From: Takakia lepidozioides
Taxonomy: Eukaryota; Plantae; Bryophyta
DNA length: 64,000 nucleotides
Direction of reading: 5' to 3'
NCBI GenBank assembly: GCA_030704615.1
Contig: CM060734.1
Coordinates: 22,134,001-22,198,000 of the forward strand
This document shows positions 7,101 to 39,468 of this stretch, in pieces; the first letter of the stretch is position 1; the number at the start of each line of letters is the position of its first letter. Under the pieces are notes generated by a model that had not been told where the DNA came from, searched no databases, and was given only the letters and a program-made list of their open reading frames with translations. The position numbers and the translations under genes are program-made.

Positions 7101-8071
7101 TAAGGATAGCGATTTGGAGTTTTATGTCCGAAGGGCCAAGGCATAGAGATCCTTCTTGTTGATTGTATGTTTAATGTGTCGCTATGTGGCTCGTAAGGTT
7201 TCGGCCACTGGGAATGCTGCACTTGCCACTAAAATCCCGGATTCTACGAAAATTCTGATGTATGTACGTATGTATTGCATAGCAGCCGCACATTTGGAAT
7301 TTGGATTCAAGGAGGTTGCGTCATCATGTACTGTCCTGATGCAGAGAATAGGTAGGTTGCTGCCAGAAATATAGACTGCAAAGATAGTAGACTAACCTGT
7401 AGTGTGGAATGCATTGGTAAAATGAGGCACAAGCAAGAGACGAAAGCAATATTAAAAAACATTTTTTAATCATGTCCAAACTGGACTATGTGTTCACACT
7501 ATGGAGTCTAGATTTTGCAACGCCATTCACACTGTTGCCGTGAGGTTTTTAAGGGCCTCTACAGTAAGGCGGCTTACTTCTCCTCAATCTGCCACCCGAG
7601 TCTCACACCATAGATAGTAGTTGGCAGGCAATTATATCGGCTCTGATATACGCTATGTTAAAATCATAAATCTTATAACTTTTTTGTTCTATCTCTCTCT
7701 CCTCCACTCAGTTACAATTCGTCATTGGTAGTGCGGAGCATCGCGAAGCCTTAGAAGATATTTTTTATTCCAGTGACGACAAGGTCAGAACCGGTTTTAG
7801 CATAGGCGAGAATAGGCTCTTTCTCGTTCGTTTCGTTACGGCGCCAATTTCCGAGCTATGTATGTCAAATCCGCGCACTTGCATCATATGTGCAGCAGGT
7901 GTGTGGAATGGAGGCTTTGGGGATGTGCGTATACTATGTACTGTGTTGTGCATGTCCTCAGTGCTGGGTCAGATGTCTTGGTAGCGCTCAGATGTGTTGG
8001 CTTCAATGCTCCGCCCTTAGAATGTTGGTGAGCTGGATGTGCCTACCTTGATTTTTATATATGGGGTGCAG

Positions 8072-13423
<5,352 letters not shown>

Positions 13424-13589
13424 GTGAGAATATTGTTTACATTAAGTGTAGGAACTGGTGTGTGATAAGTAGGGATGGGACGTTTGCTAGAAAAAAATGT
13501 AGGCTGTTTATGTCTCCTGCTAGCAGCAAAGGGAGGATCTGTGCATTATTGGGCTGTGGCAGGGATAGCTGAAGGAGCAGGGATGGAAT

Positions 13590-14743: not shown

Positions 14744-16456
14744 CCTCTTGCCTCTATCCTAAAATGCACAACTCCAAAACATGGTCTCATATGATCGCCC
14801 GCCCACTCGCCCCCCCTCCCATACCTGTCCGCACCAAACCCCCGATAGCCCAGATGGACCTTCCCCTCAGATACCCACCTGCCAACTCTCACTACACCGA
14901 CGGATCCCTAATAGCTGGCCCCAGGGCGGGATATGGTATCTACCACGCCGCCACCAGCCAAGGCGTCTCCCTATGCCTTCCCGGCCCGGCCACCATCCTC
15001 CGGGCCGAGCTCATGGCAATACACGATGCCCTCACCCAGCTCTCCTCATTTTCCCCATCTCACTATATCTTAACCGACAGTCTGACCTCACTCTTGATCC
15101 TCATCCGTAACCACCTTTCCCGACCCTCCTCTCATCACCACCACTCAGACCGGAACCTCATCGCTGCCATAGTTCATCTCGCTATCTCCATAAACCAACC
15201 CATCTACTTTCTCAAAGTTCGCTCCCACACTGGCATCACAGGCAATGACATGGCTGACTTCTTTGCCCAGCAAGGAGCCACACGGCCCGAGGTTGACCCT
15301 ACCTCGGATCCCATCCATGTGGCCCATGCACACCCATTCCGGTCCATACATCCAGTCCTGGCCCCACGGAGCCCCGCCCCATCCGCAAATCTAAAAACCA
15401 CTATTACACGAGAAGCAGACAAGCAAGCCTTGACATCCCATAGTCACTTTAAACTGCATGTCTAGAATTGGACACAATCTGAGGTGCTCCACCATAAGCT
15501 GTCTAATCACTTCTGGCACACTCGCTTCGCCACTGATGCCCAAATCAAACAGACTCTCAAATTCAGATACGCCCAATACATGGGCCACCAGTGCAAACAC
15601 ATCTTTTGGCCCCGCCTTTTTCCCTCTCCAAACTGCCCATTTTGCGCTAGCACTCACTCGGCCCGCGACACTTGGCCTCACCTACTCAATCAATGCATGC
15701 ACCTCGTCATCCATGGCCTCCGTATCAACCGACATAATCAAGCTATCTGGCACATCCACAAACTACTCCTTCGCCGCCCTGAGACATGGTTTTCACTCAT
15801 CAATGCCGGAACCTACCAGGGAAGGCCCCCTGACCATACGGTACCCCACTGGCTCCTACCCTGTCCATGCAGACCGTCTACACCCTGCACTTGCCCAGCC
15901 AGACTCTGTCCATACATACTTCTAATCCAAGGGCTACCCATTGACGCCCCACCGCCAAGTTCCCCGTCCTCCAACCTTACCATATACTTTATAGAATTTA
16001 TATATTGTAACGACCGCTACCCCGGCCCATCCACACTGGAAAAACGCCAATAATACGCCCCACTCATTTTAGCCATTCGCCGCCGTGGCTGGTCCACAGG
16101 CCCTCTCACGGTCATTACGGCCGGCACCAGAGGCGGCATTCACAACGCTAGTATCTCTGCCCTCCACGATAACTTTAATCTACCTATCACCCCTATCCAC
16201 AAATGCTTCAAAGCTATCCACCTGACTGCGCTACGCTCCCTCACTGCTATCATCACTAACAAAAGGCAGCTTGAAAACCACACCTCATAGGCCTCTTGTC
16301 ACCTGGGGCACCCCAGGGGCCCCCCCCTGGGGTTCCCCTCCGCTCGCCCCCCTGGGCACCCGCTAGTTTTATAGGGCCCACCCCCGAAAGGGTGCAATAG
16401 CCGCAAGGTGAAGTGGCTCTTAGTTACGCCGGCCTTGGCCGGAGTCATCTCTCTCT
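14744..16456 (+). mobile_element. Non-LTR retrotransposon copy 2, 3' half (RNase H, CCHC, RLE, structured 3' UTR)
   Basis: RNase H with D-E-D-D residues (HYTDGS..RAELMAI..LTDSL..KVRSHTGITGNDMAD). CPFC..DTWPHLLNQC..RHNQ..IEFIYCNDRYP..EKRQ*Y. Colinear with copy 1 from ~3820 to its end. Ends in (CT)n. Confidence 0.8.
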
Positions 16457-17074
16457 CACTGAAACTCCCCAATCCCAGGAAACCTCCATGGGCCATCCAG
16501 GAATGGATAGGCTGGATGCCTGAAACCAATTCCAACCGCCACATCACTGTTTGGAGCTTTAAAGTTTGTGTCTAGTAAAAAGGACAATCGAGATAATAGG
16601 ACAAGACAAAGAAAATATTGAGTACTTCCACAGGAGGCCCAGAAGACCTACAGGATATAGTAGAAAGAGAAAACACAATGGAAGCTTAGCCAATTTTTTG
16701 TGGAGCCAACTTCCCTAAGCTTTAGGCAAATGATTTTAGGGTTGGCATTGACATCACATCGAAAGACAAGCGAGAGACAAACAGGCGTGTGTGCACAGGT
16801 TTCTGTCAAAAATGCACCCCTGCGGAATGCAGAAGGCCAAGGCCAATAGTAACCTCAACATTACGGGGAGGAATGTAGCCACAAAAATTGTGCATAAAGT
16901 CTTGATGCACTTAGGCAAGAGACAGACATACATATCTGAATCTGCTGAAATGCCTCCTTGGTTTAAAGTCTGTAGTGCCTCACATTAAAGCATCTTCACA
17001 TGCACAGAAGTGCCAGAAGAGGCATTGTGGACTCCCTCAATGATCCTCTTTCAGAAATTGTGGTCATCGTTGAG

Positions 17075-17990
17075 GTGCCTGATTTTATCATTTGTGCCGC
17101 TGCAACTGCTGCCTCTAGTTGACCATCTACCCATGTAAGTTTCTTGTAGCTATTGATCCACATGGAATCATAGGTAATCTTGTGCTTGAAAAATTTGGCC
17201 CCCTTCATTAGCAATGCCTGATTTTATCAATTGTGCCGCTGTTGTTGCGGCTTCCAGTTGAGCATCTACCCATGCAGCTTGTAGCTATCCTTCCACAGGG
17301 AATCATAGGTAATCTGGAGCTTGAAATCCGACCCTCTAAGATGAATGTGGACCCACACTCTATCCCTGCTCCTTCAGCTATCCATGCCTTTGCACAAATC
17401 ATGCTTATTACACTAGTTCCTATGCTCAATTGCCTCTGCTACTCTGATAAGAGGGGAAACAAGGTGAAATGTGTTGAAGAATGCCTTGATTAGCAGTGCC
17501 TGATTTTATCAATTGTGCCGCTACTGTTCCGGCTTCCAGTTGACCATCTACCCATGTAGGTTTCTTGTAGCTATCCTTCCACAGGGAATCATAGGTAATC
17601 TAGAGCTTGAAATCTGGCTCTCTTGGATGAATTTGGACTTGTTTCTGGATACTTTCTTGTTGTCACATGGTAGTATCATGTCAAAGTTACTCCACACTAT
17701 CAAAGCTAACTTGCAAAATTCAACATGGAAATTTAGGGCCGATTCTGATAAGAGGAAAAAACAGGGTGAAATGTGTTGAAGAATGCCTTGATTAGCAGTG
17801 CTTGATTTTATCAATTTGTGCCGCTGCTGCTGCGGCTTTTAGTTGAGCATCTACCCATGCAGCTTGTAGCTATCCTTCCACAGGGAATCATAGGTAATCT
17901 GGAGCTTGAAATCCAGCCCTCTTGGATGAATATGGACCCACACTCTATGCCTGCTCCTTCAGCTATCCATGCCTCTGCACAAATCATGTG
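17075..17990. repeat. Four imperfect tandem copies of a ~130-300 bp decayed coding-like unit
   Basis: The core gcctgattttatcaattgtgccgct...gtagctatccttccacagggaatcataggtaatct recurs at ~17075, 17215, 17497 and 17798. The minus strand reads ITYDS.W.DSYKK.TWVDGQLEA..AAQ.IKSG with frameshifts. Confidence 0.8.
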
Positions 17991-18254
17991 TACATCCTCG
18001 CCTTGCTGCTAGCAGCTGACAATGACAGCCTAGAGCTTCTCCTCGTCTTTGTTATCTGAACATGCATCTCAGGGCCGAGTCCGATGAGAGGCAAAATAGG
18101 CTGAAATAGGTCAAAGAATAAGGTGTCGTCATCCCCATCACTGGTAGAAAATTAGAGCTGAGTTGACAACATCCACAAAACCACAATGTTGGTTGATTTG
18201 CAAACTCTACGGATTCACTCTGCGAGGTTCCTTTGCAAAAGAAACACACACGCC

Positions 18255-18505
18255 GCAGTTACTTACGTCCGTTCAGGAAGTTTTTATTTTTGTGCTTTTC
18301 TCTTTGGGCAGTATGGGCAGCTCAAAACAAAAATGACGACGACAACGTGGCGTGACGACGATGACCTGGCTACGATGACATGTCTACGATGATGTGGCAA
18401 CGATGACGTGGCACTTTGGCACCCTATTCATGCTCTACGCTAAACTAGCTCTCGACCTTCGGTCGTCGCTAGAACTAGGGCTTCGCGTTGCTCTGCACTA
18501 CTAGC
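18255..18505 (+). mobile_element. Possible short non-autonomous Helitron-type element: tandem G-box-like repeats and terminal hairpins with CTAG
   Basis: ~15-bp units acgatgac(g/c)tggc at 18335-18415. Hairpin cgac-cttcg-gtcg followed by CTAG (18452-18480), then a second GC-rich segment followed by CTAG. Confidence 0.3.
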
Positions 18506-20235
18506 GACGATTTCTGAGAAGGACGTCCGGATGGATGGGCCGTACTCAAGGTTTATGAGAGAGTACGAACATGAGCCCCAGCCACACTGCCAGCAATCTG
18601 TAAAAGCCATCGTCACGTGTCCTCTCGCTTTATCAGACAAGGATGAATTTTTGAATGCCCTATAAGAAGTCATTTCCAAATTGTTAATGACCGGTGGGGC
18701 AAACAGTAACAATCCAATCAGCATACATCGCAGTTCTCACCAGTGGAGGAATCAGTGATCAATACTGCTAAGCCTTGTTCGTGAACCAAAATCACATTGT
18801 ATTGGACACTGAAAAAGTATGCATAGTTACTCTACTGGGCGTAGCATTCTCTTCCTCCCTCTTGAGTTATCACAGTAAAACAAAACAATGCCTCTCTTAC
18901 CAGCACCTCCTTTTTTGGATCGGTGATACTGTAGAGGCGAATGGTGTACAAAATCTGCATCCATGAGACAAAAGTCAACTTTGATCTTCATAACATAGGC
19001 ATTGCTCTAATTATTGCTGAATCTTACAGCGAGTCATTAGTTGATATGCTCGTTTAATTTTCTATCGCATTCCTCCCTCAGATTTTCTTAAAACTCAAGA
19101 TTCCCAACTGAACCTTCTCCTCTAGTCCACATAATGCAAACCTCCCCCAACCCACCCACCCCCTGCCCTGCCACCCAAGCAAAACGTCTTTTATTGATAT
19201 CCTTCTTCTTCCCTTATTCTTCCCTTATTCTTAGCATTCATTGTCCCATAAGCTCTTTGTACATTATCAAGTTCATCTTCTCTGTTATTGTGGTTATGTT
19301 GTTGTTATACTTAGCCCCGTAAGCCCTCACAACCCTCTACGGACATTGTAACATCTCTTTCATTGTCTCTCTATTATGTCCTTAGAAATGGTTATATGCA
19401 ACAAGATATACCCCAGTCCAGAACCTCGGATTTTTAACAGTAAGAATCACAATCCAGGTGGCGAATCCTATTTAGAAAACAAGCGTCACATGGGTAACCA
19501 TAATAGGCAGCTTGGGAAATACCCTGCCATTCACAACTTGTCGGCCCGTATCTTCCAGACGGTGATCCAAATCAAGTAATCCTGATCGCAAGCGCATTGA
19601 TCCAGCTCCTCATGTCTCTCTCCCTCTTTGACTCCCCTTCTTTCCTCCCTAGATTTTCCCCACACTCTCTTCACTACAAAGTTCCACTCGTCATCTCTCT
19701 TTGCGCAAACAGACAGTTGCCGGCTAGTCGAAGCCTTTCGCTACTCCCGCTCCTAAATCTCTCTCTCTCTCTCTCTCTCCGCGTTCAAGAAATTACGGTT
19801 AAAGCAGTTCAAGAAGTTTTTAGACGGTTCAAGAAGTTTCAGACAGTTCAAGGAGTTAAAGAAGTTCTTGTTCTTGTTATTCATTAGTAGAGAAATTGGT
19901 TTTTCCTACACCAAGGGTACCTCACACCTGACTCAAACATAAGACAAAAAGTTGCTTGTTAGGGTTGCGGGGGCACGTTCGATGTACACGGGACTTCGCG
20001 TTTTGTTTGTCTTCTGTGCCACCATCTGTGTTTTCTTAAGGTTCGCGAACCAGGATAAGAGGTTTCTAAAAGACTGGTATCGGGTTGGCGGGGGGAGGAG
20101 AGAATAGAGAGAGAGAGAAGTGCCGCGCAACGAGTGTACTGTTTGTGGGATCGAGGATCGACCTGTATGTTCGCTCTTGTTGTGTCGGCCATTGTCACGA
20201 CGTGTGCTATACGGGAGCTTTAGAGCGGAGACAGC

Positions 20236-21730
20236 AGGGAGTGTTCAACAGTATGGCTAAACGAGATGTAGTGTCGTGGAGTGCGATGATTGCATGCACA
20301 GCAAGGGCACGGGATGGAGGCTTTGGAGACCTATGAGCACCTTCTTTCATAACTTTTGTTTGCATTTGCAATGCGTGTGCAAGCCTGGCAGCCCTGGAAA
20401 AGTGCAAGGAGGTCCATGGTGACATCGTCAAATCTGGAATTGTACCCAATGTCATTCTGAACACTGCCTTGGTGGACATGTATGTCAAATGTGGGTGCAT
20501 CGAGGATGCAAAGGGAGTGTTCGACAGTATGGTTGAACGAGATGTGGTATCGTGGAGTGCGATGATTGCAGGATATGCACAACAAGGGTGCAGGATGGAG
20601 GCTTTGGAGACCTTGAGCAAATGACGTGCGAAGGGGTGAAGATGGTCAACTGAAGGCAGCAGTTGCACCGGCACAGTTGATAGAATCAGTTTGTGTTTGC
20701 AATGCGTGTGCAAGCCTGAGAAAAGGGGAAAGAGGTCCATGGTGACATCATCAAAGCTGGAATTGTACCAGATGTCATTCTGAACACTGCCTGGTGGACA
20801 TGTAGGCCAAATGTGGGTGCATTAAGGATGCAAAGGCAGTTTTCAACAATATGGCTGAACGAGATGTGGTGTTGTGGAGCGCGATGCTTGCAGGGACGTG
20901 GGGCAAAGAACTTCCCTGAACTTGTTTCCAGATGCAGAGAAAAAAGGTAGATTGTCAATACCTGATGTGTGGGCACCTAATTGTTTATATCAAGGTAGGC
21001 TCAGCCTCGAGATTTTGGAAGTTGTTGAACAGAGGTGATGAGCAGAAAACAGATATTGTCTTCAGGCTGCACTGGCACGTCCTGCCGTCAGTGTGCATTT
21101 GCAAATCGTATGCAAGCCTGGCAGCTTTGGAAAAGGGCAAAGAGGTCCATGGCGACATTGTCAAAGCTGCAATTGTACCAAATGTCATTCTGAACAATAC
21201 CCTCGCAGACATGTAGGGAGTGTTCGACACTATGGTTGAACGAGATATGGTGTCGTGGAGTGCGATGATTGCAGGATATGCACAGCAAGGGCGCGGGAAC
21301 TGAAGGAGCAGGGAACACTGAACACTGCTCTGGTGGACATGTATGCCAAATGTGGGAGCATTGAGGATATGAAAGGAGTGTTCAACACTATGGCTGAACG
21401 AGATGTGGTGTCGTGGAACGCGATGCTTGTAGGGTATGCACATCAGGGGCGCGGGATGGAGGCTTTGGAGACCTATGAGCAAATGATGGTGGAAGGGGTG
21501 AAGCCCGACCACATCACGTTTGTGTGCGTTTGCAGTGCGTGTGCAAGCCTGGCAGCCCTGGAAAAGGACAAAAAGGTGCATGGTTGCATCACCAAAGCTG
21601 GAATTGTACCAGATGTGATTCTGAACAATACCCTTGTGGACATATATGCCAAATGTGGGGAGCATTGAGGATGTGGTGGGAGTGTTCAACAATATGGCTG
21701 AACGAGATTTGGTGTCGTGGAACGCGATGT
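20236..21730 (+). pseudogene. Second, heavily scrambled PLS-PPR cluster
   Basis: Repeated GVFNSMAERDVVSW / ALEKGKEVHGDI.KAGIVPDVILN.. pieces, similar at the DNA level to 13590-14743. Many deletions, stops and foreign fillers (20641-20689, ~20905-21090). Confidence 0.88.
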
Positions 21731-22484
21731 TTTTGTTCATTGCGAAAAAAAAAGAAATCCTGCAATGCGTGCACGGCTATTGCACCCATTGAACGGATGT
21801 GGTTGAAGCCCCTCTTTTGCCCGCATGTGCTTGAACATGTGTGCGACACAACAGACGAATAAATCATTTGCCTCCCCATCGACACCAAGCCATTCCATAA
21901 TGTAATTGAATTTAAATTAATTTTAAGCCAATAAATAGGTTTGCAATGCCTTTCATCGGGGGTTTCTGGCACGTATCGATTTTGTTTTTAGCTCAATTTT
22001 GTTCTGCGGCTTCCAGCATCCCACCACTACTTCCCCGCCAAAATTTGGGCCAATCAAAAATGCCCCCCAAAAAAAGTGTTCTCTTTCGCTCACTATTGCA
22101 TAACTCTCTATGAAAGAGATGCATGAAAGTTGAACACAAATCAAGTTTGGAGTGCAAAACAGGGAAGAAACTGTGGTTTTGGGTCCAAATGAATTATGTT
22201 CGCTCCCAAATTTGGCACGCACGTTGCATATGGTTACATTACACGCCCCATTCAAAAACCGAATGAAAAAATAAAATCGTGAGCACGCGCAACACAGTCC
22301 AACAGGCCCCAAAGCAATAGCAGATCCAGCGGAATACATTCAACGGATGAACGGATGGTTGCCCATCCAAATCATTTTTGTTTGCTTCCAAACTTTGCCA
22401 ATACGTTCGAGACACCCTCTCACAGGTCCCGGACTAATATCAGATCAATCGAAATTCATTCGATGGCTCAACGGTCTATGTTCC

Positions 22485-25400
22485 CTGTCACATGGGCAAT
22501 TCGATTGATTGCTTGATACAGCCTTTGTCTACAATAAGGTGCCACAGCCAATAGCTGTCCAATGGTAATTTCCGATTTGGACTGGCATATTACTTCAGCC
22601 AAAGTCCCTTCATTACTCTGCATTTTTGCAGCTTCTTTCTTCCCTTCATCCTCACTCACTTCCTCTTCTCTTTCAGAATCAGAGGAATCTGCCATATGAA
22701 TATCAGTACTCTTCTGCATTTCCCTTATGGTATCTGCCACTTCCTTGTGCAGTTCCTTCTCATCTCTCCAAGCCTCATCATCTTCAGGCACATCACTGTC
22801 ATCTTCATTATCATCACCTTCCTCATCTACTTGAGGTATTATCTTGGCTTTGCTTCTGGTTCCTATCATTGTACTTACTTCTGGTACAACACATGGCCTA
22901 ACCATGTGAGCTGCCACCACTGGCCCCTCATTCACAGGAGCTCTCATCTCATTCTGGTGTCTGATCCAGAATGGACAGGCTGCCTTGCGATGTCCTGCCT
23001 GATTACAATAGTAACACAGTTCTTCCCCATTAGGTCCTCGCCCTTGGTCTGTTATGGGATTGTTTCTGTAATCCTGATTCCCTGGCTGGTAATTCCCCCT
23101 TGGATTACCCTGATAGTTGCCTCTGGAATTTCCTTGGTAATTCCCTCTTGGATTACCTCTCCCTTCCATGCCATTGTTATAACCACCAGGCCTACCATAG
23201 TGGTCCTGATCACTGTTTCTTCTTGGCTGGGGCTGCACTTGATGCACCCTTACTTGCCTAGGTTCTCTTGCTGCTGTCCTTCTGTTGTAGTAACAATTCT
23301 CAGTAGAATGCTTATCCATTTTACAGATAGTACAGTGTTTCTCCTTCATGTGGCATTCAGTGGTGGTATGGCCTTCATTCTGGCATTTTGCGCACCAAAC
23401 ACCCTTCCTCCAATGTGTTGCAGCCTCTGTGGCATACTTCTTCAAGATTTCTTCTAATCTTTTCTCATAGTCATCCCTCTTCAACTTTTCCTTCCTCTTA
23501 CTCTTCCTTTTAAACTCTTGCTCTTCTTCCTCATCCTCAGAGTCCTCATCATCCCTTTTCTCTCTGAGCATTCCCGATTGTTCAATTCTGTTCGCTGTTT
23601 CAAATGCCTCCTCCACTGTATTATGGGGTAACATATCCACTTTCTTTTGCAACTCTGGTCTTAGTCCACTCACAAACCAACTCTTCTGTAAACCTAGTGC
23701 TGGTACAACAGCCAGCTTTTTCATCATCAATTCCATCTTTTCCATATACTCCTCAACAGTTTCATGCTTCTTTTGCTTTAACTGTTGTAAACTTCCATAC
23801 ACTTCATCCTCAGTTTTACTTGTCCTGAACATATTTCGGAATGCTGTATTCAAGCCATTCCAGGTTAGGAAATGATTATCAGGGAATCTTGCATACCATT
23901 CACTTGCTTTCTTTATAAGTGAACAAGGAAACAGTCTCATCTTGGCATCATCGCCATTCTCATTGTTCACAATACACATGTGCTCAAATTGGCTAATGTG
24001 TACATCAGGATCCCCTTTTCCTGAATATATTGGAAAAGGTGGTTTTGCCCGTGTTGGTTGTAACGCCATCTGTGGCCCTACCTCCTGCCCATTGACAGGT
24101 GCTGGCCCCCTTGCTGGTGCTGGTCCTTGAGGACCTGTTGTAGTTGTGGTGGAACTTCCACCAAGTGCAGGCCCTTGAGCACTCCCTGCTACTGGCCCCA
24201 CTATATTCACAGTTCCCAGCTCCAGTTGCACTACTTCCCACACTCCCTGTCCTCCCAGAGCCAGATCCAGGCTGCCCGCCTGATCCCCCTGAACCGACAC
24301 CTTCGTTGGCCTGTGATCCAAGTGCTCCACTTGATCCAGGTCCAACGGGTTGGGATGTCCTGGTTGTAGTCTCAACCTCAGCTGTTGGGTCTAGTTCTTC
24401 ATACTCTTCCTCTTCCAATTTCTTCTCTCTGATTTCATCTTCCTAGTTCTGCCCTTGGGTTTCTTCTTCTTCACTCATGTAACTCAATTGTAATGGTGTT
24501 GGAGAGTCTGAACTCTTCGTTGGTTCTGCCACATCCTCTCCTCCTTCTTCGTCTTCCGTTTCAGAAATTAGAGTTCCTGCTTTTGGTGTTCCATGCCAAC
24601 TCTTATCAAAGATTTCTGTCAAATTTTTTATCCAGGGATGTACCTCAGATCTTTCACCTCGTGGTTGATCTTCTTCCTGTACCAATTCCCTTAATATTTC
24701 TTGCAAAGAAAAAGAAGGAGTGGCATCCAACTCTAGTTCTTCCGGTATGGGTGATGTACTCTCTGATCTTAATGGTGTGAGAGGTCCAGATGATTCCCCT
24801 ATGTCTATTCCCCTCTCCCAAAAATATGGATAATTAGCTTTCAGATAACTTTCTCTTTTTGCTGAATATCTCTGGAGTCTAGCTTCTCTTTCATCACTCA
24901 TGTCCCATGTCTTTCATTTCCTTAATGTGGCAATAACCAAAACTCTCTTCTGTAGTATCTCTCGTATATGCCCGGGTTTCTTTCAAGCTTCAATGCACCC
25001 TTGGCTATACTAGAAGTCTCCGTTACCATATAACCATATGGCAAACAAGTCTGGAAAGCTGTTCTTGGTGTGAGTTTGATCCACAGAATATCCTTTGGAA
25101 TCCAATTCTTTACCAGTACAAGCTCCTCATGCATATGAGATGCTATCACATAAACCAGTGTTGGTAACCAACGTGCTCTTCCTCTACAGGCCACCTGATA
25201 AATCTTTATCACTCCTTTCTCCAGACCCCACTCAGGGTCAGCATCATGCACCATCTTAAGAATGTTTTCCTTACAACCGTCTGGCAATTCCAAGAACCTC
25301 TGAAAGAATTGTTTGGACAATCTTTCCTTCTCAGTTTCACAGGGAATTTGATTCACATCAAATTCTTTAATTCTCCAGCCACCATGATCCCACCAGATGT

Positions 25401-25566
25401 CTATCACATCTGGTTGTTCATGACCCAGTTCCCCAGAATGGTCGCCAAATGTCGAGCGGCTTTTACTCACCCATCCCTTCGCTATCCGAGGTGGAAACTC
25501 CAAGATAGAAGAGTTGGATATCTCTAAGCACTCAGCCTGCTCAGAACAATCAGTCATGACCTGCAA
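22485..25566 (-). mobile_element. Truncated Ty3/Gypsy-like LTR retrotransposon: gag (24901 to ~22485, one stop and one frameshift) plus an upstream 214-aa ORF; pol absent
   Basis: Retrotransposon gag motifs (YSGKGDPDVH..LFPCSL..ASEWY..LKQKKHETVEEY..FVSGLRPEL). Three CCHC knuckles (CAKCQNEGHTTTEC, CTICKMDKHSTENC, CYYCNQAGHRKAAC) and GNYQGNPR repeats. Ends at ITIGQLLAVAPYCR.., just before the expected protease. Confidence 0.85.
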
Positions 25567-26034
25567 CTAGTGAATCATGGTTGTGCTTCCTATTTGTATT
25601 CCTTCCTGCCTTCATGTTATCAATTTACCTTACCGTGTATACTGAAGCATCAGATTGCTTCAGTATCTACTAAGTTCCAGTTAATCATGCATTCATTTAT
25701 GCAACATTGAACATGATCAGACCTGAATCACAAGAACACACAAACCACCACCCCGAAACCAAAAAAATCTAGACCCTAACTGCAATCCAGCACCTAAGTT
25801 TTTCTTCTATGGAGCCGTTACCATGCATCATAATGTGCTTGTGTATGAAGCAAAAGCCTACAGGATTGAACTGGAAAAATGGCACTATCTGTGTCTTGTA
25901 TATTGGTATCAAGCTCTGAGTTCTAGAGAGTTCTGAATATGAGCCTGGTAGTTGGGCTCCCATAATAGGGTAGTACTGGTATGCCATAGGTTTAGTGGTT
26001 GACATGTATCTACCTGGTGATATCAGGTTGATAC

Positions 26035-27650: not shown

Positions 27651-29069
27651 GTTGATACCTAGTATTGATAGCCGACGAAACCCTCAATACCAGTACAACA
27701 CCGAATCAAACCGTGCATCTCATCACCTCCATTACCATTACCTTATCAATGGGCTACTCACCAAGTGGGGAGGATTTGTCCGCCAAAGGAGTCCACACTC
27801 TCTACATCGGACTACCATGAGATTGGATGCCTGCATTAAGTTCTTATTCTTTTTATTGTTTTCCGCACAAAACATATTTCCAATCAAAATGAAATAAACA
27901 TTGTAAAATTCGGATATTGTTCCCATAAGTGGTAAGGAGCAACATGCAAGCCTAGTATTTCAAATGCAAAAGGTTCCTGTACACTGATCAGTAGCCTATT
28001 GGTAAAGTGATGACAATGGTAGCTATGAGGTACAGGCTCAATTCTTGATGGGTGGTGGTGTCACCCTAGCTCCAGTAGTTAGTGTCACCTTGGTTTGTAT
28101 TGCCTCACTTGTGTCAACCCAGCTAGTGTAATTTGTGTCACCCCATGTCTCACATTCCTCTAATTAGTACATTTTAGACTCAGTCAAATTTCGTGACACC
28201 AAGTGGGAGGTGCAGCAATTGGAATGACACTCCCTTCCGTATCACCTCGGTGTCATTCTGGCCATTGTGTCACCCCAATCTCGAGAAAGGGTGGGGAAGA
28301 TTTAACATGCTAAAAACCGAACGTTGTGCATTAAGTTCTTACATTATTCCTGCTGTTCTCCAATTTCAGGGCTCCTCTCCCTTTTCTTTTTTCTCTTAAG
28401 AAAATCATCCGATAACACTAGGGACATGATGGATGAGAAGAAGACGGATGGGTGCATGGATGGATGGATGAATAGCTGGCAAGATTGAGATTTGGCGAAT
28501 TGGCAGCGGGCCCCACAGCGGGGACCCGATTGCACCGTGGCCGCTGTGCTGGCGCGCTATCATTTTTCCACGCGGCGGAACAGGACCCAGGTGTCAAAGC
28601 AGGTGCTGCCGGTCGCATTAGTAATCGGGGCCGTGCACATGGACGCTTCGACGGTCAGAATCGCAGGGGCGGGGCATATGTAATGTCGCGGGAGTGTAGG
28701 GAATCTGCGTGTTCTCGGGCTCCTCATCACTGCCTCCCTGCCCTCCTCGCCCTCTCGCTGGGTGTTGTTGCAACGACTCTCGAGGAGTGCCAAGGATTTA
28801 GTCCTCACGACTGATTCCCGTGATTGATTTTGGTAGATTTGATAGAATCATCATACGGTAAGATTGTATTTCTAGGTGCCTCTGCAGCTGTTTGGTGCGA
28901 AGCAGAAAGTGTGCAACTGTGCACGCAGAGCTGAATTTCGCATGCCATCGATAGACCAACAAACTTCACAGTTTCCTGTAGAGGTTGGGTTCAGTGTGTC
29001 GGTAATTGACATTCTTATTACTGGGAGGACTGTAATCCAGGTACGTTAAGCACTCTGAGTCCAATCAGC

Positions 29070-31830
29070 ATGAAGGCGTTGTTTGCGAACTCATTCGGAG
29101 CAGCTGCACATGTAGGCAGTCGGCCCTCTTACCCATCTGGCGATACCAAAAATTCCACCACTGCAGCGTTGCGAGACAGAATTGTGTCTGGGAAGCAGTG
29201 TTCGAGTTCAGGGGTCCGTCAACCTTGCAAGCGCAGGGTGGGATTGATGTCAAAACACGTGTGGATAGAACCGCCTCGGGCACCCAGGCGGCCTAAAGTT
29301 ACCGAATTCGTAAGCTCGGTAAAATGTTCTAGCTTGCAAGGAGGCGTTGCCGCCGAATCTGCACGAGGGCAGATCAGTGTCAAGAACCTGCGATGGACGG
29401 AGGAGGATATTGAATTGTCAGGGTATGATGCAGGCGATGTCCGAAGGGTAACACTAATACGTACCATGTCCGTGGACATGGACGGGGTGCCTGTGCAATG
29501 CGATGGTATGTTAGATCAATTACAGGTCGCTGTGGGTTCCTCTCAATCGGAGATTGAAGCTTGGCCGCAGCCTGCAGTTGGTGGATTTACTAGCAGCAAT
29601 CAATTCTCCCTAGATATGTCTTCTGCTATAATTGGAGCTAGCGCGGCCTCGGACGTGCAAGTTCTGGCAGCTCCTGTGTATGAGCCCAAGCTCGTATGGT
29701 TCGCAAAGTCCGAGAAGGAAGAGGATAGATATCTCGACAGAGCTATCAATGTCACGTTAGCCGGGGCTGCCTTCTCGTACGCCGTGGCAAAAATCTTCAC
29801 GATTGACCATGACTATTGGCATGTAAGTAAAAAACTTGCAGAGAGCATCATAAATTCCTTCCATAACTTTGAAATGTTTGCTGTAAGCTGCGCGTGTACA
29901 AAAGTAAATGTTGTGTACAGAGCTCTTCAGTGATCCTTCTAAGTAATTTATGCAGGAAAAAAGTTTATATGAACTCAGGCTGCCTTGAACAATTAGGCGG
30001 AAGGTTCTGATGTGCAGGAAGGATTCAACTAACGCAATTTCCTTTCCTGGGGGCAGGGATGGACTATTTTTGAAATTTTGAGATATGCGCCGCTGCACAA
30101 TTGGAGTGCATATGAGAATGCTCTACAGAGAAACCCAGTGCTGGCGAAGATGATGATTAGTGGCTTCGTCTACTCTCTTGGTGACTGGATTGGCCAGGTT
30201 AGGAGGATTCCTTCATCGCACTCATATCTCCTCCTTCAAGAGTTCAGAAGTAGGAAGGTTCAGTTGGACAACCAATGCCATGTAGATGGGCAAGTCACTG
30301 CCTTTTGTTCATCCAAGAAGGGTCATATGGAGTGTAAAGAAAGACACACATGTGGACACCAATTGGGAATGGGAGGAGTGAGATGTGCGCAATACAAGAC
30401 AATGGGGGACAATGAACCTGAATACAAAAAGGGTTCAGAACATAAAGGATGCACAGTTGGAGATAGAGCAAGACATGCTGAAGAAATGCGGAACCAAGCA
30501 AGAGTTAGTAGCAGGGGATGATTATCTTGATCATGATACCGCCACCACACCAATATACAGAAATCTTAATGTCATCAACAACAACAATGTGCAAGGGTTG
30601 TGTGGTCAAAATTTATTGAGTGAAGATTCAAACATCATTCCTGTAATGGCACTTTTTCTGGACTTTTTGATGAATGTGTCAGGCACTACTGTAGTTTGCA
30701 ATTATAAACTAAAGTTGATTGTACTGGAAGCAGGGGACTTTCTGATGTAGTTGGCCTGACCTAACAAATATTGGTGCATGTCCCTTAATTTCCAGTGCAT
30801 GGAGGGGAAGTCCGTGTTCGAGTTTAACAGAGTACGCCTACTAAGATCGGGCCTCGTTGGATTCTGCTTACATGGGTCCTTGTCCCACTATTATTACCAT
30901 GTTTGCGAGGTATAAATTCTCACCACCAGGATTTTGTTTCCTCTTGTCAGCTGTGTGCTTGTTTTGGGTGAGAAAGGAGCGTCAGGTGCGAAGTTTGTCT
31001 TACAGCTGGTAACTGATTTGGCATTTTGTCGTTCTGTCTTTGCAGTTCTTGTTTCCATTCAGGGGTTGGTGGGTGGTTGCACTCGAAGTCTTGTTCGACC
31101 AGACAATCTGGTCAGCCATATGGAATAGTGTGTATTACATCGTGCTGGGGCTTCTACGGTTTGAATCACCTGCCACCATCGTGAACGAGTTAAGAGCAAC
31201 ATTTTTCCCTCTACTCAGCGTAAGAAACTCTCCTTGAAATGCCAATCGTCCATTCAAACCCTTGGTTGTTTCCATTCCTGTCCTGGATGTAAATCAAGTA
31301 GTTCGTTATTGAACAAAACTTCAGCCATGGTTTCCAGCTCTATAATGTAAACATTGTCTGAATGGTTTGCAGGCTGGGTGGAAACTATGGCCATTTGCAC
31401 ATGTAGTGACGTACGGGTTTATCCCAGTAGAACAGCGACTACTGTGGGTGGATTGTGTTGAGATAATCTGGGTCACTATCCTCTCCATGTAAGTATGCTC
31501 CCACAATACATTCTATATCTAAGTTGAAGTGTAAAGTGAACAATCTTCAGAGCAGCAGTTGGCGACTAAGTTAGAAATGAAATTTAGGCACAGTTGAGAA
31601 TATAGTTTGAATAAATGAAAGATGGGATGATTATGATGCAGAGCCAAAATCCATGATAGTATTAGACAATGTCCTCCACAATCTAGCCTATGCAAGTTTG
31701 CAGATGTTGAATTTACACCTTGTGCAGGTTTGCAAATGAGAAAGCCGAGAAGAGATCAGGAGAAAGCGAAAAGGTTCTCATTTTATCATCGGGATTGGTT
31801 GAAAACATACCAAGCGAGAAGCTGCAATAA
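29070..31830 (+). CDS. Mpv17/PMP22 family membrane protein with long, probably plastid-targeting N-terminus; 6 exons
   Basis: Exons 29070-29822, 30057-30197, 30796-30909, 31046-31219, 31373-31488, 31728-31830 splice in frame. Motifs DHDYWHGWTIFEILRYAP.HNW, LAKMMISG.VYSLGDW, FDQTIWSAIWNS, GWKLWPFAH..TYG.IPVEQRLLWVD. Confidence 0.92.
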
Positions 31831-33129
31831 CGAATAGTGTTCTCTAGTACCACGGAGGGGCGTCGATTGTGCAAAGAGGTGCTCAGTAGTGAAATTTAGG
31901 TTTGCGGGGCTGTTAGAGCTCCAAAAGCAAGTAGTGGGCAGGTTAGTCATTTACATGAATTGTGCCAGTAAGATGATGGTGAAAAGGAAGCAAAAGAAAA
32001 TAGACAATTCCAACTCCATAGATACATCAAAATCAGAACAGAAAATATGTAATGTTTGATATCAATCAAAGACATCAACTGCCATTGCCAAAATCCACAA
32101 GACTCGATTTTCTCCAGTTTACATGTTTTGGTGGGGGGATAGAAAGGAAAAATAAACATCCCTAGGAAGTTGAAAGAGCTTATGAAGCTATACAAGCAAG
32201 ACAATAGACAGTATCTACCACTCGTTCTCCAAAGGGGAGAAGACCACCACTGCACCACTCATTCTACAGTGGGGGCTATAAAAGATGGGAGCATGGATTG
32301 AATGGACACCTTCAGACATGTCCAATGATCTTGCTTAATTCTTTCATTCACAGCACAAGGACCCGCTGCAAAGGCTACAATATACCATTGATTATCCCAC
32401 AAATCAGTTCAGATTTTTTTCCTTGTCTAAAGAGAAACACCTGGAAGTGACAGTTCACAAATCAGGCCCTCCTTAATTACATTGAGAGGAGAAAATAACC
32501 TCTTTCACAGTAACCTCGCCGTGACACTTGCTGATGGGACAGGAAGAGGGCGTTCAGATTAACTCATCCATGCATTAATTCACCAATCATTTGTCAGTTG
32601 ACTGCTTAATCAGTAAACTTAACTGCCGAGCCAGAAAATTCCATCAGTTAACTGACATGGATAACAGTTGCTCAAAAGCCTCTGAACTCACATGGACAGG
32701 AAGGTACATGATCTCTCCTAGATTAACTCAAATCAAGAATTTCTGTCAAGCTAGAAACCTTATTGTAATATTGCTTAGTCGGCTCAGACCGGGAACCAAT
32801 GGATAAAGAATTACAAAACTTAGTCTCCAAAAGTGTCTGCTCAGGAAAAAGGTTAATTACTGAGAGGGGAACCAACCCTCCTAAGATGATAAACTGCTCA
32901 TTCTTTGAGGTTACTTTGTCTGAACTCGACTATCACAACACACTTGGTTGAGGTGGGAATGGAATGACTCACCATCCCCAATGACTCCGTTGAATCTCAC
33001 AGCCCAAATTAACAATTACTCAACAGTCTTTTCACTAACCAAACAGTGCAACTTCCAGGTCTAGTGCAAAGACCAATTCAAGCAGTTAATCTAGGGCTGA
33101 TCACCTCTCGTCTTCGGGCTATAAAGATC

Positions 33130-36100
33130 TTACTGCTCCTGCATCAGCTCTTCCTCGTTGAGACCATTAGTCTGAGCAAGCCGATAGTAAAGAAGCAATG
33201 CTGTAGCCATGCAGGACCTGCTACCCACAAACCACAGTTACCCTTATTCTGGACAAGTAACCTTCATTAGGCAGTTCATGGAGGGTTGCCCAAAAGATGT
33301 TATGGAAGTTCAGGTGTGATAGCAGTAATACCCCATTTAAAATAGGACTGGACCAGCCTAGCAGGGACTATCATTATTTTTGTTGCCAGCGAGAGGGATC
33401 GGATTTCCTAGCTTAGGAGTTTAATTATGATCAATCATTTGGCCCAAGTGCAAATTGACATTTCTGGCTAAAACAAAGTTGTTCTTGGAACAAACAAGCT
33501 CCATGGCATGAAGCTTTGACAATGTTGAGCCTAACAGGTTTATGAGCCAGCCAAGTTGACCAAGAACTTCAGTGAGCAACTTGCCAGGCCTACAGACTCG
33601 CTCCTTAAGATTAAAGATCCAGAGAAATGGTGGTAACAATACCAAAACCACCACCCATGGGTTTCCCACACACTAACAAGACTGAAGTTCATGGCCTACA
33701 CTGCCCACCCCAAAGGTTGATCCCTACGACCAAGAAATAGAAATAACTGAACCCATTAGACTGTTCATCAGAGAGGCCATATACACTGCAATGCTTGGAC
33801 CACAGAAAAGTAGACGATGTACTCTTGCCATTCCCTACGAAGGTTGGCTTGCCACAGCCTTACGGCCATCGACCCCGCGGGAACTAACGTCCCGGAGCCT
33901 TTTGTGGAGTTCACACCCACTAGAGTTTAGCTGCAGGTATTAACTTATTTTCCCGCCACTGCCATTAAGGTGCTCACAGAGGCACTTGTCCACATGCAAA
34001 GTCAAAAGCCCGATTGCAGAGATATTGACTTTATATTTTTAGCCCTGCGTTTACCACACAAATGACGTGCAGGGGGAAGACATCTGCCCATCACACTGGT
34101 TGTGTGCAGGGCGAAAAGAGGGACGGTAGAGAATGACCCAATGAGAAGAAAGAGGGGCCACTTCTGTGAATGTGAGACGCACACAAAGGTTGACTTACAG
34201 GATTGCAAAAGCAAGAATGATCTTCCTCACATCCATTGTGGAGGAGCGCTGGCGTCGCCGCGAACGCCCATCAATGAGTTCCTCTGCCTCTGGGCCGTCG
34301 CGCCCATCCTTCCTGGCAGAGGCGGTCACGGGCAGCGTTGGCAATCCTGGAGACCAAAACGGTAGCAAATACCTCACCAGTTGCCTATGCACAGGACCTG
34401 CCCAACAACGGCATTTTTGTTACAAAGATAGCCTAACACCAGATATACAACATAAAAAGCATGTTGAAATCAAGTTCTTGCCTGCCAGGGAGTCATCTCT
34501 AAATTTTCAACCACTTCAAGCAAATGACTACGATGCTTCATTAGTCATTAGAATGTAATCATAAGAGATTGTTAGCCATGTGACTTTGTGGCCATAGACC
34601 CCGTGCCCAGTTTGGGCATAATAATTCATAATTCATCAGAGAGAAAGACAGTGCTGATGGAGAAACACTTGATTGGAACTCACCCCGCCGAGAATACTTG
34701 CGGCTAATCCCATCTTCATCATCCTCATAGTCCACAAACCCTGCACCATTTAATCTATCTCCACGAATTGACGTCTTTCTAGTCATAGTTCCCGTTTGTA
34801 GTTGCTGTTGCATACAAGGAAGGGCATCAGATAACAGTCATTCTGTGCAGCTGATAAGAAGCAGTGAATGTAGAATTGATGCACTGTAATTTAGTGTGTG
34901 GATTTTGTCTGGTACAGTACTCATGAGTGCTACTGGTTACAAGGATGAATTGGGTTACTAATACAGGTCCCTGTGAAGTAGACATCCTTACTGAGAAATA
35001 CTCCCAAGCCATGATGCAAGTCTGATACATGGTGATTCACGTTGTCTAAGAAGAACATCGGACCAGGTTTGACAATGTTCCACCCACAGGTTGGTGATTT
35101 AGTACTGAATCCATTTAACAACCTGAAGCAAGGCAGGGACAGTGAGTCAGGAGGGAAGGAGTTTCACTTACAGCTGCTGCCTTAGAATAGCGGGGCTCAT
35201 GAGATATGACACTGACTGTGGGGCCCCCGGATACTGTGGAAGAAGATGCCTCGGCCTCTGGTGCCATGTCGGATTTGGAACCAACACCTGGCCCATTCAC
35301 CCTGGCCATGGGCAGCCCATCTCCATTGGCCAAAGAACCCTCACCCAGATGGTTGTCTACTGAGTGGTCATGCCCATTTGCCATGTTGACCTTAGTGGTT
35401 GACGGAGATATGGCAGCTACCTCAATCTCAGAAAATCCAGATGTAGGCGCTGTAGTATCGGGGAGTGAAGTCGACACAAGTGGCCCTGTAGAAAATGCTG
35501 GTGGAGGTGCCCTTGGGCCAGTCTCATCATTTCCTAGAAGAGTGTTTGCAACACCACTCTGCAAGCATAGGCTCGTGCTGAGATAATATAGAAAGACCAC
35601 TCCCTTGCAACTTGTTGTTTGGTTTCTGTTGTATGTGTTGTTGCACTGTCTCACATGGGCCCTCTGGGCCTCTGAGCATGTATAAACTTCTCCTCTGTTG
35701 CTCCTCACTCTGTAGGAATTAAGATTTTCTACTGCTTCATCGTTTGTGGTGTGTTCTTGTCCAATAAGCTCTCTGGGCTTCCCATGGACATTACATGGAC
35801 ACAATCATATTCCCCCTCCATGTCACCCAATTAGGCTGAGCATATGACCATTCCAGAGCAAAGATCATAACAAATAAGCTGAGCAGAGAAGCATACCCGA
35901 TACAAACCTGAGAGATGACATCTTTCAGCTTGTTGTGCAATGTAGACCCCACATCTTTAAAATGCTTGTTTGGAGGCCATATCTGTGAAAATGAAATGCA
36001 CATGAAAGGATTCGACCAAATCACATTCCAGCTAGTGCTCATTATTTGTTACATATATTTGTTACTGACAAACAGCTATTTTAAGAGAGTGCAACCACCA

Positions 36101-38497
36101 TGCAGACTGACTGCTTCCCTAATATACAAGGTGCCACCATGGGCTCCTTAGACACAGGAATGGCTTACTGGTGTGGCGCATGTAGGGCAGACATAGCCAG
36201 CAGGAGCAGTGTGCGGAGGAAAGCTTCGAAGATGAGACTCCAGGCAGCTCGTATGTGTGATGTCTGTCATCCCGACACGGACACCGAACAATGATAAAGT
36301 TCAGCAATAAGAACTAAACAGCTGAAATTAGCCAGCAATAGTAGATTAGACTTGTTAAACTTAAATCCTATGACTGTAGATACACTTCTTAGAAGATTGA
36401 CTTGGCAGAACATATGCAGCTCACAGACACTAGGAACAGCTGAGGTACATCAATGAGAAAAATGCTCCCAAACCAATCTATGGCCACTCAGATATGCTAT
36501 GGAAAAACAGATATTGGGCCCTCAATCCCCGCTTACCAGTTCTCCAAAGAAATTGGTTAAACCCTTCCAGAGAAGCTCACATGTGGGTCATGTCCTAAAT
36601 TTGAGATCTGTTTGAACCATCTGATGCTTCGTTTAAGACTGCTGTGAGATTGTCACCAGAAATCCAACCACTCGGATACAAGTAGCAGAGATTGAAGGTT
36701 CTGCATCAGAAAATAATAAGACAAATGAAGGGAAACTTACGTAAGCAACCAAGGCGAGTCGTAGCTGTGTCACCATCTTCGAGAATGTGTTGGCAAGAGC
36801 TGCATTTGGGTGGCCAGTCAAAATCACCATCTATAACCCACTCTGAATATGTCCTGACCTGCCACAGAGACCCCGAAAAAAGCCTTTTCTATCAAATTAC
36901 ACATTTGACATCAATGGATCATTTCTCCATTGTTTCAAAGGATTGCTTTCAACCCATACCACAAATTCAGAAACAAGATTTGCTCATGACTATTCAGTGT
37001 TGCTCTTGCTCCTGCACACACAACTCATTCCCTGATGGTATCTCTGACAACCACACTCACCCTTATCCCACACATCAAAGCTTACCTATCTGAAAGATGC
37101 AAACTAGCTCTAACTTGCCCCCCTCTCTTGGACAAAACAGAATCTACAGGGAGCTCTAAGTCTTCTGAACAGCAAACATACTCAAAGACAAATTACAGCT
37201 GGTCTTACATCTGGCCAGAACTTGTTCAAGTTGGGAATATCATATAAGACGGGATAGCAGAAGATAGTACCACACAGAATTGATGCTCTGGATGGCAGAT
37301 GCATTCAGCACACACCGGCCCCTTGTGCACAAAACAATAGAGCTTTGTTGCCTGTCATCACCCATTGATCAAATTCTATTCACATTTTAGCACACTCAAA
37401 CTAAAATTGAGGAAGAGGACAGCAGGAGAAAGGGAATAATAAGAACCAAGACTTGATCCAACAGAGGGTAGGCAGGCAAGGGACACCCTTGGCGACCAGA
37501 GTGGGTCAATGATGTGCCATCGAACAGAAAACAACTCAATAAATACATAAATAAAAAAGTTGGAGATTAAAGCATTCCAATGATGGGCATTCGGCAACTG
37601 CAAGTGTGTGCAAAGGACATGATTAATTTAATGTGAGACTGCAGGAAAGGGCTTCTCCAGAACAAGAACCATAAACGCGGTCAAAGGACATTTTCCTACA
37701 AATCAATCCACACAACCATGATGCGCAGCACTTTGAAGTTGTGCCCAGGAAGCAGTCACTTGCAAGAATCCAGATACAACACATCTCTGGCCTTCTCTAT
37801 TTGATGAGGGGCAACAAAGAGGGAGCAAGGGCGGGTCAAGAGAAAGAGTAAAACAAGCGGGACAAGGTGAAAGAGATGTTTGAATTGGAGAAAACCCACA
37901 CATCAACTCTAGTGAGGGACACATCCCCAATCTGCAATCTGCAATTCGAATGCACGAAGTTACATGCACATAAAAGCTTCTGCACTAGACAAAAACCTAG
38001 ATCCTCCGTGCAATGTCGCACTATAGGGACAATTAAACATAGACGGGAATGGTTGGCTCATTTCTTGGCAGGTAACAAGTGAAAGCAGGATGGAAGTTTA
38101 AGTGTTGTATGGTTAGCATCTCCCTACGATATTGCAAACAAGTCACGAACTACGATTTCAGTACATACAAATGACCCCACGGGGAAGTAAATGTGAGATG
38201 CAGTAGAACCAGTTTACCATCCGCCTGACCAGGATGCTCAAATGTTGCATAGAAGTACATGTTTGCATCGATCCACAGACCTTATCTGACCCTCGATTGG
38301 TGGAATGGCTATGGTAGTATTCAATTATCAACTTGAAGCTGCAAACTTTGAGACTAATCAAAGAGACGCTCAAAAACATAGAGGAAAAACAAGAAGATAG
38401 AAAGGCATTAGGTTGATCTCAGATTGTAACCCACTCCTCTGACACATCCTAGAGAAACCGGATAGGAACATACCTTGCGGCATCTGCACACCACCAT
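33130..38497 (-). CDS. ZFPL1: Zinc finger protein-like 1 homolog (B-box-like + RING/PHD, C-terminal membrane anchor); 9 exons
   Basis: Exons 38497-38474 (MVVCRCRK), 37351-37271 (ATKLYCFVHKGPVCAECICHPEH), 36858-36741 (VRTYSEWVIDGDFDWPPKC), 36263-36169 (SFPPHTAPAGYVCPTC), 35982-35908, 35558-35172, 34804-34684, 34397-34199 (RKIILAFAIL), 33217-33130 (SCMATALLLYYRLAQ..*). All introns are GT-AG. Confidence 0.92.
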
Positions 38498-38994
38498 GGC
38501 CTCTACAGCCAATCACTTAAGCACCCACCCACGTTCTCCCTTGGACCTTCCTGCTTGTTGCGTGCGGCAATCCTACAATCTCTCTTTCTTTTCCTCTCAC
38601 TCTCTCTCTCTGATCTATGGAGATGTGTTCTTCACTCTCCATATCGCACTCGGAGCATCTGGAAACCGGCTAGCACGGTCGCCCCCCGCTGGGCCGAGAC
38701 CTACCCGGTCACCAGAACAACGGATGCCGATGATAGCGGATCAGCAGGGAAAAAGCTGCTACATAGATTGATTGAGCAGCATAATAGATGGATGATGGTT
38801 TTTTCATCCAATGAATATTATCATTGGGCATGGATGGTTGTTGGGGTCTTTTCGGTATGTAAATGGTTAGACGAAATCAGTGTGTTCCTATGGAGCGCGC
38901 CCTCAAAGACAGTGCGGTATGTAAATGGTTAGCCGAAACCAGTGCGCTTCTATGGCAGATTGCCGACTCCATTCTCAAAATTCAAAAATTTAAG

Positions 38995-39468
38995 CCCTCA
39001 TGTGCTGCAAGCACGTTCAACCATCTCCACATTGCCATGAATCTTGCAGGCACCAAGCAAGGTCCTCCATACCACAACATCTAATTCAATTGGAATTTTG
39101 TTAATGAAGTCCTCTGCCTCATCTAATCGCCCTGTAGAAGGTCAACCATGCAGACAAAGTGCTCTGCTGTTGAAGTGACACCATGATCTTGACTCAGTGA
39201 ATCAAAGTAGTGTTTTCCTTCATCTACTAGGCCAACAGGGCTATATACGGAGAGAACACATATGAAGGTGTAACTGTCCAGTTCAAGCCTTCCTTTTGCA
39301 TTCCTTCAAATAGTTGCAGGGCATTCCTGTGACAACCATGCTGGGCATATCATGTGATCATTGCAGTCCATGACACCAGATTTCGTTCAGCCATATTGTC
39401 AAACACTCCTTTTGCTTCTTCGATGCTGCTGCATTTGGCATGTCCACCAGGGTATTGTTCAGGATGAT
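38995..39468 (-). pseudogene. C-terminal half of a PLS-E class PPR gene (S-P2-L2-S2-E1 remnant)
   Basis: Minus strand, frameshifted: ILNNTLVDM..VFDNMAERNLVSW..HGCHRNALQLFEGM..GLVDEGKHYFDSL..EHFVCMVDLL..GRLDEAEDFINKIP..VVWRTLLGACKIHGNVE. No DYW domain visible. Confidence 0.85.

Follow-up and report, generated by a model that had tools for sequence, protein, structure and literature searches.

A segment of 24,725 bp in the nuclear genome of the moss Takakia lepidozioides (contig CM060734.1) has probably been reversed by a single paracentric inversion of positions 14744-39468, with two breaks and end joining. Both ends of the segment lie in the window, that is, the whole stretch of 64,000 nucleotides that was analysed, and all positions given here are window positions. 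A single end-joining inversion had been proposed in an earlier note on this DNA. We find this core proposal well supported by the geometry of the locus and by two complementarity tests, one on each of the sequences that were split.

The two ends of the segment are PPR/retrotransposon junctions, and both were found, with their sequences, where the earlier note had placed them. At 14743/14744 (J1; ...gctggaattg / cctcttgcc...), a PLS-type PPR array on the plus strand adjoins a retrotransposon's 3' part. On the minus strand, at 39469/39468 (J2; ...ctctcacca / atcatcctgaac....), the 5' part of the same retrotransposon family adjoins a PPR tail. The four junction sides pair up as two sequences, one PPR and one element, which makes the junctions reciprocal chimeras. 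These joins can be read directly from the window, as can the way in which the parts of each pair complement each other and are oriented. The features that bear on the two pairs are as follows:

2918-5526, plus strand: copy 1 of the same element family, with Pfam matches to PCIF1_WW (weak) and RNase_H; used as the ruler for both element parts
11737-13424, plus strand: glutathione-reductase-like (GR-like; Pyr_redox_2) mid-gene fragment, directly upstream of array A
13585-14743, plus strand: PPR array A, the left-hand piece of the split PPR fragment, in which ~3.8 PLS triplets repeat every 303 nt
14548-15465, plus strand: chimeric 305-aa ORF spanning J1, with PPR P/L motifs, linker and RNase H
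14744-16456, plus strand: 3' part of the split element, running from the linker through RNase H and putative zinc (CCHC-like) and restriction-like endonuclease (PD..E..K) motifs to a conserved 3' end
38950-39468, minus strand: PPR tail C, the right-hand piece of the split PPR fragment; from the end of L it passes through S, P2, L2 and S2 and covers only the first ~12 residues of E1
39469-40322, minus strand: 5' part of the split element, with the PCIF1_WW-like domain and the beginning of the linker (identified against copy 1 by tblastn and blastn)

The two PPR parts fit each other. Array A carries tandem P-L-S motifs with Pfam PPR, PPR_1 and PPR_2 matches, and its units are 82-87% similar to each other. 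At the DNA level, tail C matches units of array A best (82% and 81%) and a further PPR fragment in the window, fragment B, less well (74-77%). In the unit alignment, the neighbouring repeat unit has 14438 as the counterpart of 14743 and 14447 as that of 39468. Exactly 8 nt (tacctgat) are missing between the parts, which sharpens the offset of ~8 nt proposed earlier.

What the flip restores is nevertheless not the PLS-E PPR gene that the earlier note had envisaged: the rejoined PPR sequence has no N-terminus, is cut inside E1, is frameshifted and has no DYW. Homology in array A sets in at ~13585 (unit alignment), only ~160 nt past the GR-like exon, and includes neither a start of its own nor an N-terminal (targeting) region. 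Because a GR-like mid-gene fragment lies directly upstream, array A is not a complete gene. No further exons of the GR-like fragment were detected on either strand of the window, including the place where they would be expected before the inversion. At the other end, the continuation through P2, L2 and S2 is present as described earlier, whereas a full E1 is not, the tail stopping ~12 residues into E1 near 38950; neither E2 nor DYW was seen in the rejoined sequence. The reading frame of the rejoined PPR is not open. The 8-nt loss shifts it, array A contains a frameshift and stops near 14426-14548 (translation), and tail C has lost 4 nt and contains a stop and more frameshifts. The idea that the inversion broke a putative RNA-editing factor is thus overstated and without support, because the restored PPR lacks a start, E2, DYW and an intact frame. 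Before the flip, the PPR may have been no more than a dead fragment.

The element parts are likewise complementary and do not overlap, in agreement with the earlier reading of two LINE halves. Measured against copy 1, the 5' part (40322 to 39470) corresponds to positions 2918-3794 and the 3' part (14744 to 16454) to ~3817-5525. Between them 1-22 nt are missing, an estimate taken from one relative at ~65% identity in an indel-rich linker; a gap of 22 nt has the form 3n+1, which agrees with the reading-frame offset across the join. DNA identity to copy 1 is the same in both, 64.9% in the 5' part against 64.8% in adjacent blocks of the 3' part, and the two are similarly decayed. At the protein level, the 3' part is 62% identical to copy 1 over 467 residues, and it matches Pfam RNase_H with E=4e-14 (7e-6 for copy 1). 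The 3' part contains two in-frame stops and no frameshift (translation in frame 14746). The 5' part is itself 5'-truncated, at copy-1 position ~2918, and contains one stop and one frameshift. No shared word of at least 7 nt, as a target-site duplication would leave, was found between the outer flanks of the split element, a test with little power in a copy of this age.

The domain content of relatives connects the two element parts. A search with the PCIF1-like domain identified a 1628-aa relative (P0071) whose domains follow the order RVT_1, PCIF1_WW, RNase_H. Relatives carry the PCIF1-like domain, the linker and RNase H in one ORF, which places both parts in a single architecture. The label LINE given in the earlier note is supported by these RT/PCIF1-like/RNase H relatives; the copy itself is 5'-truncated, has stops and lacks RT in the window. 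No RT was detected in either element copy within the window, nor in two contigs (L001 and L002) that encode RNase H relatives, where a weak zf-RVT match was the only hit. CCHC-like and PD-(D/E)XK motifs are readable in frame 14746 and in another relative (P0014). For this CCHC/endonuclease piece, the Atlas gave zf-RVT leads only, profile searches gave no match, and a PDB sequence search returned only chance-level matches to the SPT4 zinc ribbon. Non-LTR retrotransposons of the Dualen/RandI type combine RT, RNase H and a restriction-like endonuclease, with APE as the second nuclease of Dualen. The split element may resemble them, having RNase H followed by the putative CCHC-like and PD..E..K motifs, with RT upstream in its relatives. 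Its family differs in also having a chromodomain and a PCIF1_WW-like domain between RT and RNase H.

We infer a break-and-rejoin mechanism and its presumed polarity, that is, which order is ancestral. Two double-strand breaks would have occurred ~24.7 kb apart, one within a PLS-type PPR pseudogene fragment and the other in the proline-rich linker of the element, between its PCIF1-like and RNase H domains. At that time the element would have been an old, 5'-truncated non-LTR copy on the minus strand. The segment would then have been rejoined in reverse by end joining, with the loss of 8 nt from the PPR and 1-22 nt from the element and with microhomology of at most 1-2 nt. The outcome would be two chimeric junctions and, by an accident of frame, the 305-aa ORF, with the genes in between, the Mpv17-like and ZFPL1-like ones among them, reversed and not cut. 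A two-break NHEJ inversion has the same reciprocal chimeric junctions, refitting parts, small deletions, microhomology of at most 1-2 nt and lack of flanking inverted repeats; nothing essential is different here.

The interior of the inverted segment, past the 3' part of the element and before tail C, spans 16457-38949 and contains the following:

17202-17988: tandem repeat
20226-21780, plus strand: PPR fragment B, cut at both ends
22468-24375, minus strand: LTR-retrotransposon gag
29010-31827, plus strand: Mpv17/PMP22-like gene, exon-complete
~37354-34000, minus strand: ZFPL1-like gene, read from motifs and an Atlas lead

Two intact genes, Mpv17 and ZFPL1, had been thought to be reversed with the segment. 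Of these, the Mpv17-like gene is present and exon-complete, and its first exon matches proteins of Sphagnum and moss-like metagenomes; for ZFPL1, the motif reading and the Atlas lead suggest a gene. The Mpv17-, ZFPL1- and GR-like exons, the PPR halves and the element halves were each searched as separate pieces. The nearest outgroup contig with an Mpv17-like gene (L003, 72.7 kb) shares that gene only and has no ZFPL1, PPR or UBP neighbour, and microsynteny with this contig is not conserved. A check of the junctions against public collections returned no matching protein or contig.

The locus is pieced together from gene fragments: the GR-like one, array A and fragment B. As such a mosaic, it has seen more than one rearrangement, and its history may not be a single step. 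In a multi-step history, at least two rearrangements (nested or overlapping inversions, or an inversion with deletions) would have acted, and the PPR fragment would already have been truncated and moved earlier. Such a history would take in breaks that are otherwise unexplained, namely the GR-like end at ~13424, the start of array A at ~13585, the cut of tail C at ~38950 and both ends of fragment B. One flip, however, fully explains both junctions with small losses only, and no other break end matches up with either junction, so that we regard a multi-step origin of the junctions as unlikely. A shared left break point of array A and fragment B was not found.

It is less likely still that the 24.7-kb segment is simply mis-oriented in the assembly. 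Mis-orientation normally occurs at long near-identical inverted repeats, and comparison of the window with itself revealed no long inverted repeat at the breakpoints. Two reciprocal chimeric joins with small, unequal losses are not expected from such an error either, and the window contains no Ns or gaps. We infer that the assembly is correct here.

The two junctions could also have arisen independently, J1 as a 5'-truncated insertion or template-switch chimera in a PPR copy, and J2 as an unrelated join of another truncated element copy to another PPR fragment. PPR fragments are numerous in this genome, and non-LTR elements are often 5'-truncated and often switch templates. Two unrelated events would nevertheless need both end pairs to be complementary by chance. 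In a simple simulation, the chance of both fits was ~1.3e-3, falling to ~3e-4 when the required topology was included. In addition, PPR sequence does not resume past the 3' end of the element, and the 3'-truncated element part at J2 is unlike a product of target-primed reverse transcription. We consider an independent origin highly improbable.

Three further readings were rejected. In LINE twin-priming inversions, as here, a single LINE has its 5' part oriented oppositely to its 3' part, but those parts form during insertion and are adjacent without host DNA, whereas here 22 kb with host genes separates them and a second sequence, the PPR, is split reciprocally. Recombination between inverted repeats would have only PPR-unit matches to act on, which are 106-155 nt long, 67-82% identical and in no case span the joins. 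Simple insertion of the element into a PPR sequence fails on the absence of PPR beyond its 3' end. The single inversion is favoured because both pairs fit, long inverted repeats and a twin-priming layout are lacking, and the PPR does not continue past the element.

The chimeric ORF at J1 is a by-product of the join, as the earlier note had recognised; its translation and Pfam matches confirm that the reading spans the junction. It is absent from public collections, where a homology search gave only metagenomic RNase H proteins of 38-39% identity. Chimeric ORFs such as this PPR-RNase H fusion have an accidental origin and should not be annotated as genes.

The 24.7-kb flip cleanly illustrates a rearrangement of a known kind and is not a new mechanism. 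A literature search found no papers on nuclear inversions in Takakia. Alone, the inversion matters little; it is a small end-joined inversion, well resolved at base level, in a bryophyte nuclear genome. Its immediate use lies in annotation, where the PPR pieces 13585-14743 and 38950-39468 belong together, as do the element pieces 14744-16456 and 39469-40322. More weight would come only within a genome-wide count of such inversions. Inversions get noticed where recognisable coding sequence is cut, which is an ascertainment bias. That the flip samples an unusually high rate of kb-scale end-joined inversion in this moss genome is a tentative idea, and we think it rather doubtful. If true, it would point to a mutational regime acting across the genome, one that contributes to breaking up the very large PPR family and might also reshuffle it.

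The 64-kb window contains gap-free nuclear DNA of a plant; among named proteins, those of Sphagnum come closest to its Mpv17-like gene (~41–47% identity). On the plus strand, an array of PPR units ends with ...gctggaattg at 14743 and unrelated sequence begins at 14744 (junction J1). On the minus strand, unrelated sequence runs to 39469 and PPR sequence returns as atcatcctgaac... from 39468 (junction J2). When both joins were re-read, they matched the two junction sequences of the earlier note exactly. The sequences abutting the PPR are read as two parts of one retrotransposon copy, here called the split element; a further copy of the family (copy 1, 2918–5526, plus strand) served as a ruler for both. 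The features concerned are:

11737–13424, plus strand: fragment of a pyridine-nucleotide-disulphide oxidoreductase resembling glutathione reductase, in exon-like pieces (Pfam Pyr_redox, Pyr_redox_2)
~13585–14743, plus strand: PPR array A, PLS triplets with a 303-nt period and strong Pfam PPR matches
14744–16456, plus strand: 3′ part of the split element
20226–21780, plus strand: PPR fragment B, a second PLS-type PPR of ~5 units
22468–24375, minus strand: LTR-retrotransposon gag ORF (Retrotrans_gag, zf-CCHC)
39468 down to ~38950, minus strand: PPR tail C, which runs from the end of L through S, P2, L2 and S2 into E1 (its first ~12 residues)
39469–40322, minus strand: 5′ part of the split element

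In unit coordinates, 14743 corresponds to position 14438 and 39468 to position 14447, and rejoining array A to tail C leaves 8 nt absent (tacctgat). The first 136 nt of tail C are 82% and 81% identical to units of array A, which is the level seen among the array's own units (82–87%), but only 74–77% identical to fragment B. Fragment B lies within the segment 14744–39468, carries many frameshifts and lacks N- and C-terminal parts; on the opposite strand, the ORFs of 177 aa (20207–20740) and 251 aa (20985–21740) are antisense artefacts of the fragment. Close to the end of E1 homology in tail C (~38950), there is a 41-nt tandem duplication, 88% identical (38853–38955, minus strand).

Searches took the halves of the PPR, those of the element and the exons of spliced genes one piece at a time. 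Local alignments, blastn and tblastn placed the two element parts on copy 1. Minus-strand 40322→39470 corresponds to copy-1 positions 2918–3794 and plus-strand 14744→16454 to ~3817–5525, so that they complement each other without overlap. Reading frame limits the loss to 3n+1 nt, since the 5′ part stops after a complete codon and the 3′ part opens on the second base of one; the gap of 22 nt on copy 1 agrees with this. The break falls in a proline-rich linker whose length differs among relatives, and the true loss may be anywhere from 1 to ~22 nt. Near the break the two parts are 64.9% and 64.8% identical to copy 1, and they have decayed alike: the 5′ part shows a single stop and a single frameshift over 854 nt, the 3′ part two stops over 1711 nt. 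About ten short repeats containing cactag occupy 40600–40690 (minus strand), with ~280 nt between them and the downstream point at which the split element is truncated.

Reverse transcriptase is absent from both element copies in the window. The 3′ part encodes RNase H (Pfam, E = 4e-14). Behind this domain, motif reading of a single frame gives a CCHC-like motif and then a PD..E..K motif as in restriction-like endonucleases. The 5′ part matches the copy-1 region that contains a weak PCIF1_WW-like domain, which found 119 relatives as the query in an exhaustive HMMER search. One relative of 1628 aa carries RVT_1, PCIF1_WW and RNase_H in this order in one protein, another has a chromodomain ahead of the PCIF1-like domain, and a third, of 715 aa, runs from PCIF1-like through RNase H and CCHC to PD..E..K. 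Judged by these findings, both parts are pieces of a single retroelement ORF architecture, and the non-LTR (‘LINE’) label appears reasonable. A target-site duplication was looked for around the split element and none was found. Across the family (2290–5526, plus strand; metagenomic protein relatives P0071, P0011 and P0014), a PCIF1_WW-like domain, resembling cap-adenosine methyltransferases and unusual for a non-LTR retrotransposon, sits between RT or chromodomain and RNase H. Upstream of copy 1, at 1–2200 (plus strand), motif reading points to ORF pieces of a Mutator-type transposase with a SWIM zinc finger.

The plus-strand order is PPR-left, element-right, 22 kb of other DNA, reverse-complemented PPR-right and reverse-complemented element-left. 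Flipping 14744–39468 places PPR-left against PPR-right and makes the element contiguous on the minus strand. In a simple simulation, two random element ends fell within 25 nt of each other in 1.9% of cases, and two PPR phases on a 303-nt period agreed to 10 nt or better in 6.6%. Both fits arose jointly by chance with a simulated probability of 1.3e-3, or ~3e-4 with the topology requirement.

As the locus as a whole is a mosaic of gene fragments, several steps may lie behind it; the J1/J2 pair, however, needs a single flip only. Mis-orientation of the segment during assembly may be the cause, but with low probability: two small deletions of different size would not be an expected outcome, and it normally needs long inverted repeats. 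So does recombination between inverted repeats, which would leave like-with-like junctions, but the inverted matches are PPR-unit stretches of only 106–155 nt at 67–82% identity that do not span the joins. Twin priming predicts adjoining parts without host DNA between them, whereas here a Mpv17/PMP22-like gene (Pfam, E = 3e-14; all exon pieces conserved with a moss-like contig), the gag ORF, a probable ZFPL1-like gene (motif reading and an Atlas lead) and further features lie between the two element parts. A simple 5′-truncated insertion into the PPR is ruled against, since PPR sequence does not resume beyond the element's 3′ end (~16456).

Just past that end lies a tandem repeat (17202–17988, plus strand; units of ~280–300 nt, 88–93% identical). 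Outside the segment, a partial gag copy, 95% identical and in inverted orientation, is found at 62159–63131.

Losses at the junctions are small (8 nt; 1–22 nt), ambiguous bases number at most 1–2, and J1 and J2 contain no recognisable filler. Most likely, two double-strand breaks arose, one in the PPR and one in the element's proline-rich linker, and canonical end joining then sealed the reversed segment with small losses. The junctions and their fit are seen directly; that the breaks were simultaneous and end-joined we infer from the make-up of the junctions and from what is generally known of how inversions form. A literature search on nuclear inversions in Takakia turned up no paper.

The earlier note held that the flip restores a PPR gene. 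The parts do fit, but a working gene does not emerge. PPR homology begins abruptly at ~13585, the rejoined PPR lacks both a start and an N-terminal region, and homology is lost past the first ~12 residues of E1 (~38950), with no DYW seen. Frameshifts or stops occur at 14426–14548, with several more in tail C. The rejoined PPR is not a gene, and loss of a working editing factor through the inversion is therefore not demonstrated. Directly upstream, the glutathione-reductase-like fragment ends ~160 nt short of array A. It is the middle of an intron-bearing gene only; neither 5′ FAD-domain nor 3′ dimerisation-domain exons were found anywhere in the window. Exon pieces resembling a proline iminopeptidase-type alpha/beta hydrolase gene were read from motifs at 8000–10800 (plus strand). 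The inversion adds one more case to a known kind of ordinary structural variant, and it may have cut a PPR fragment that was already dead.
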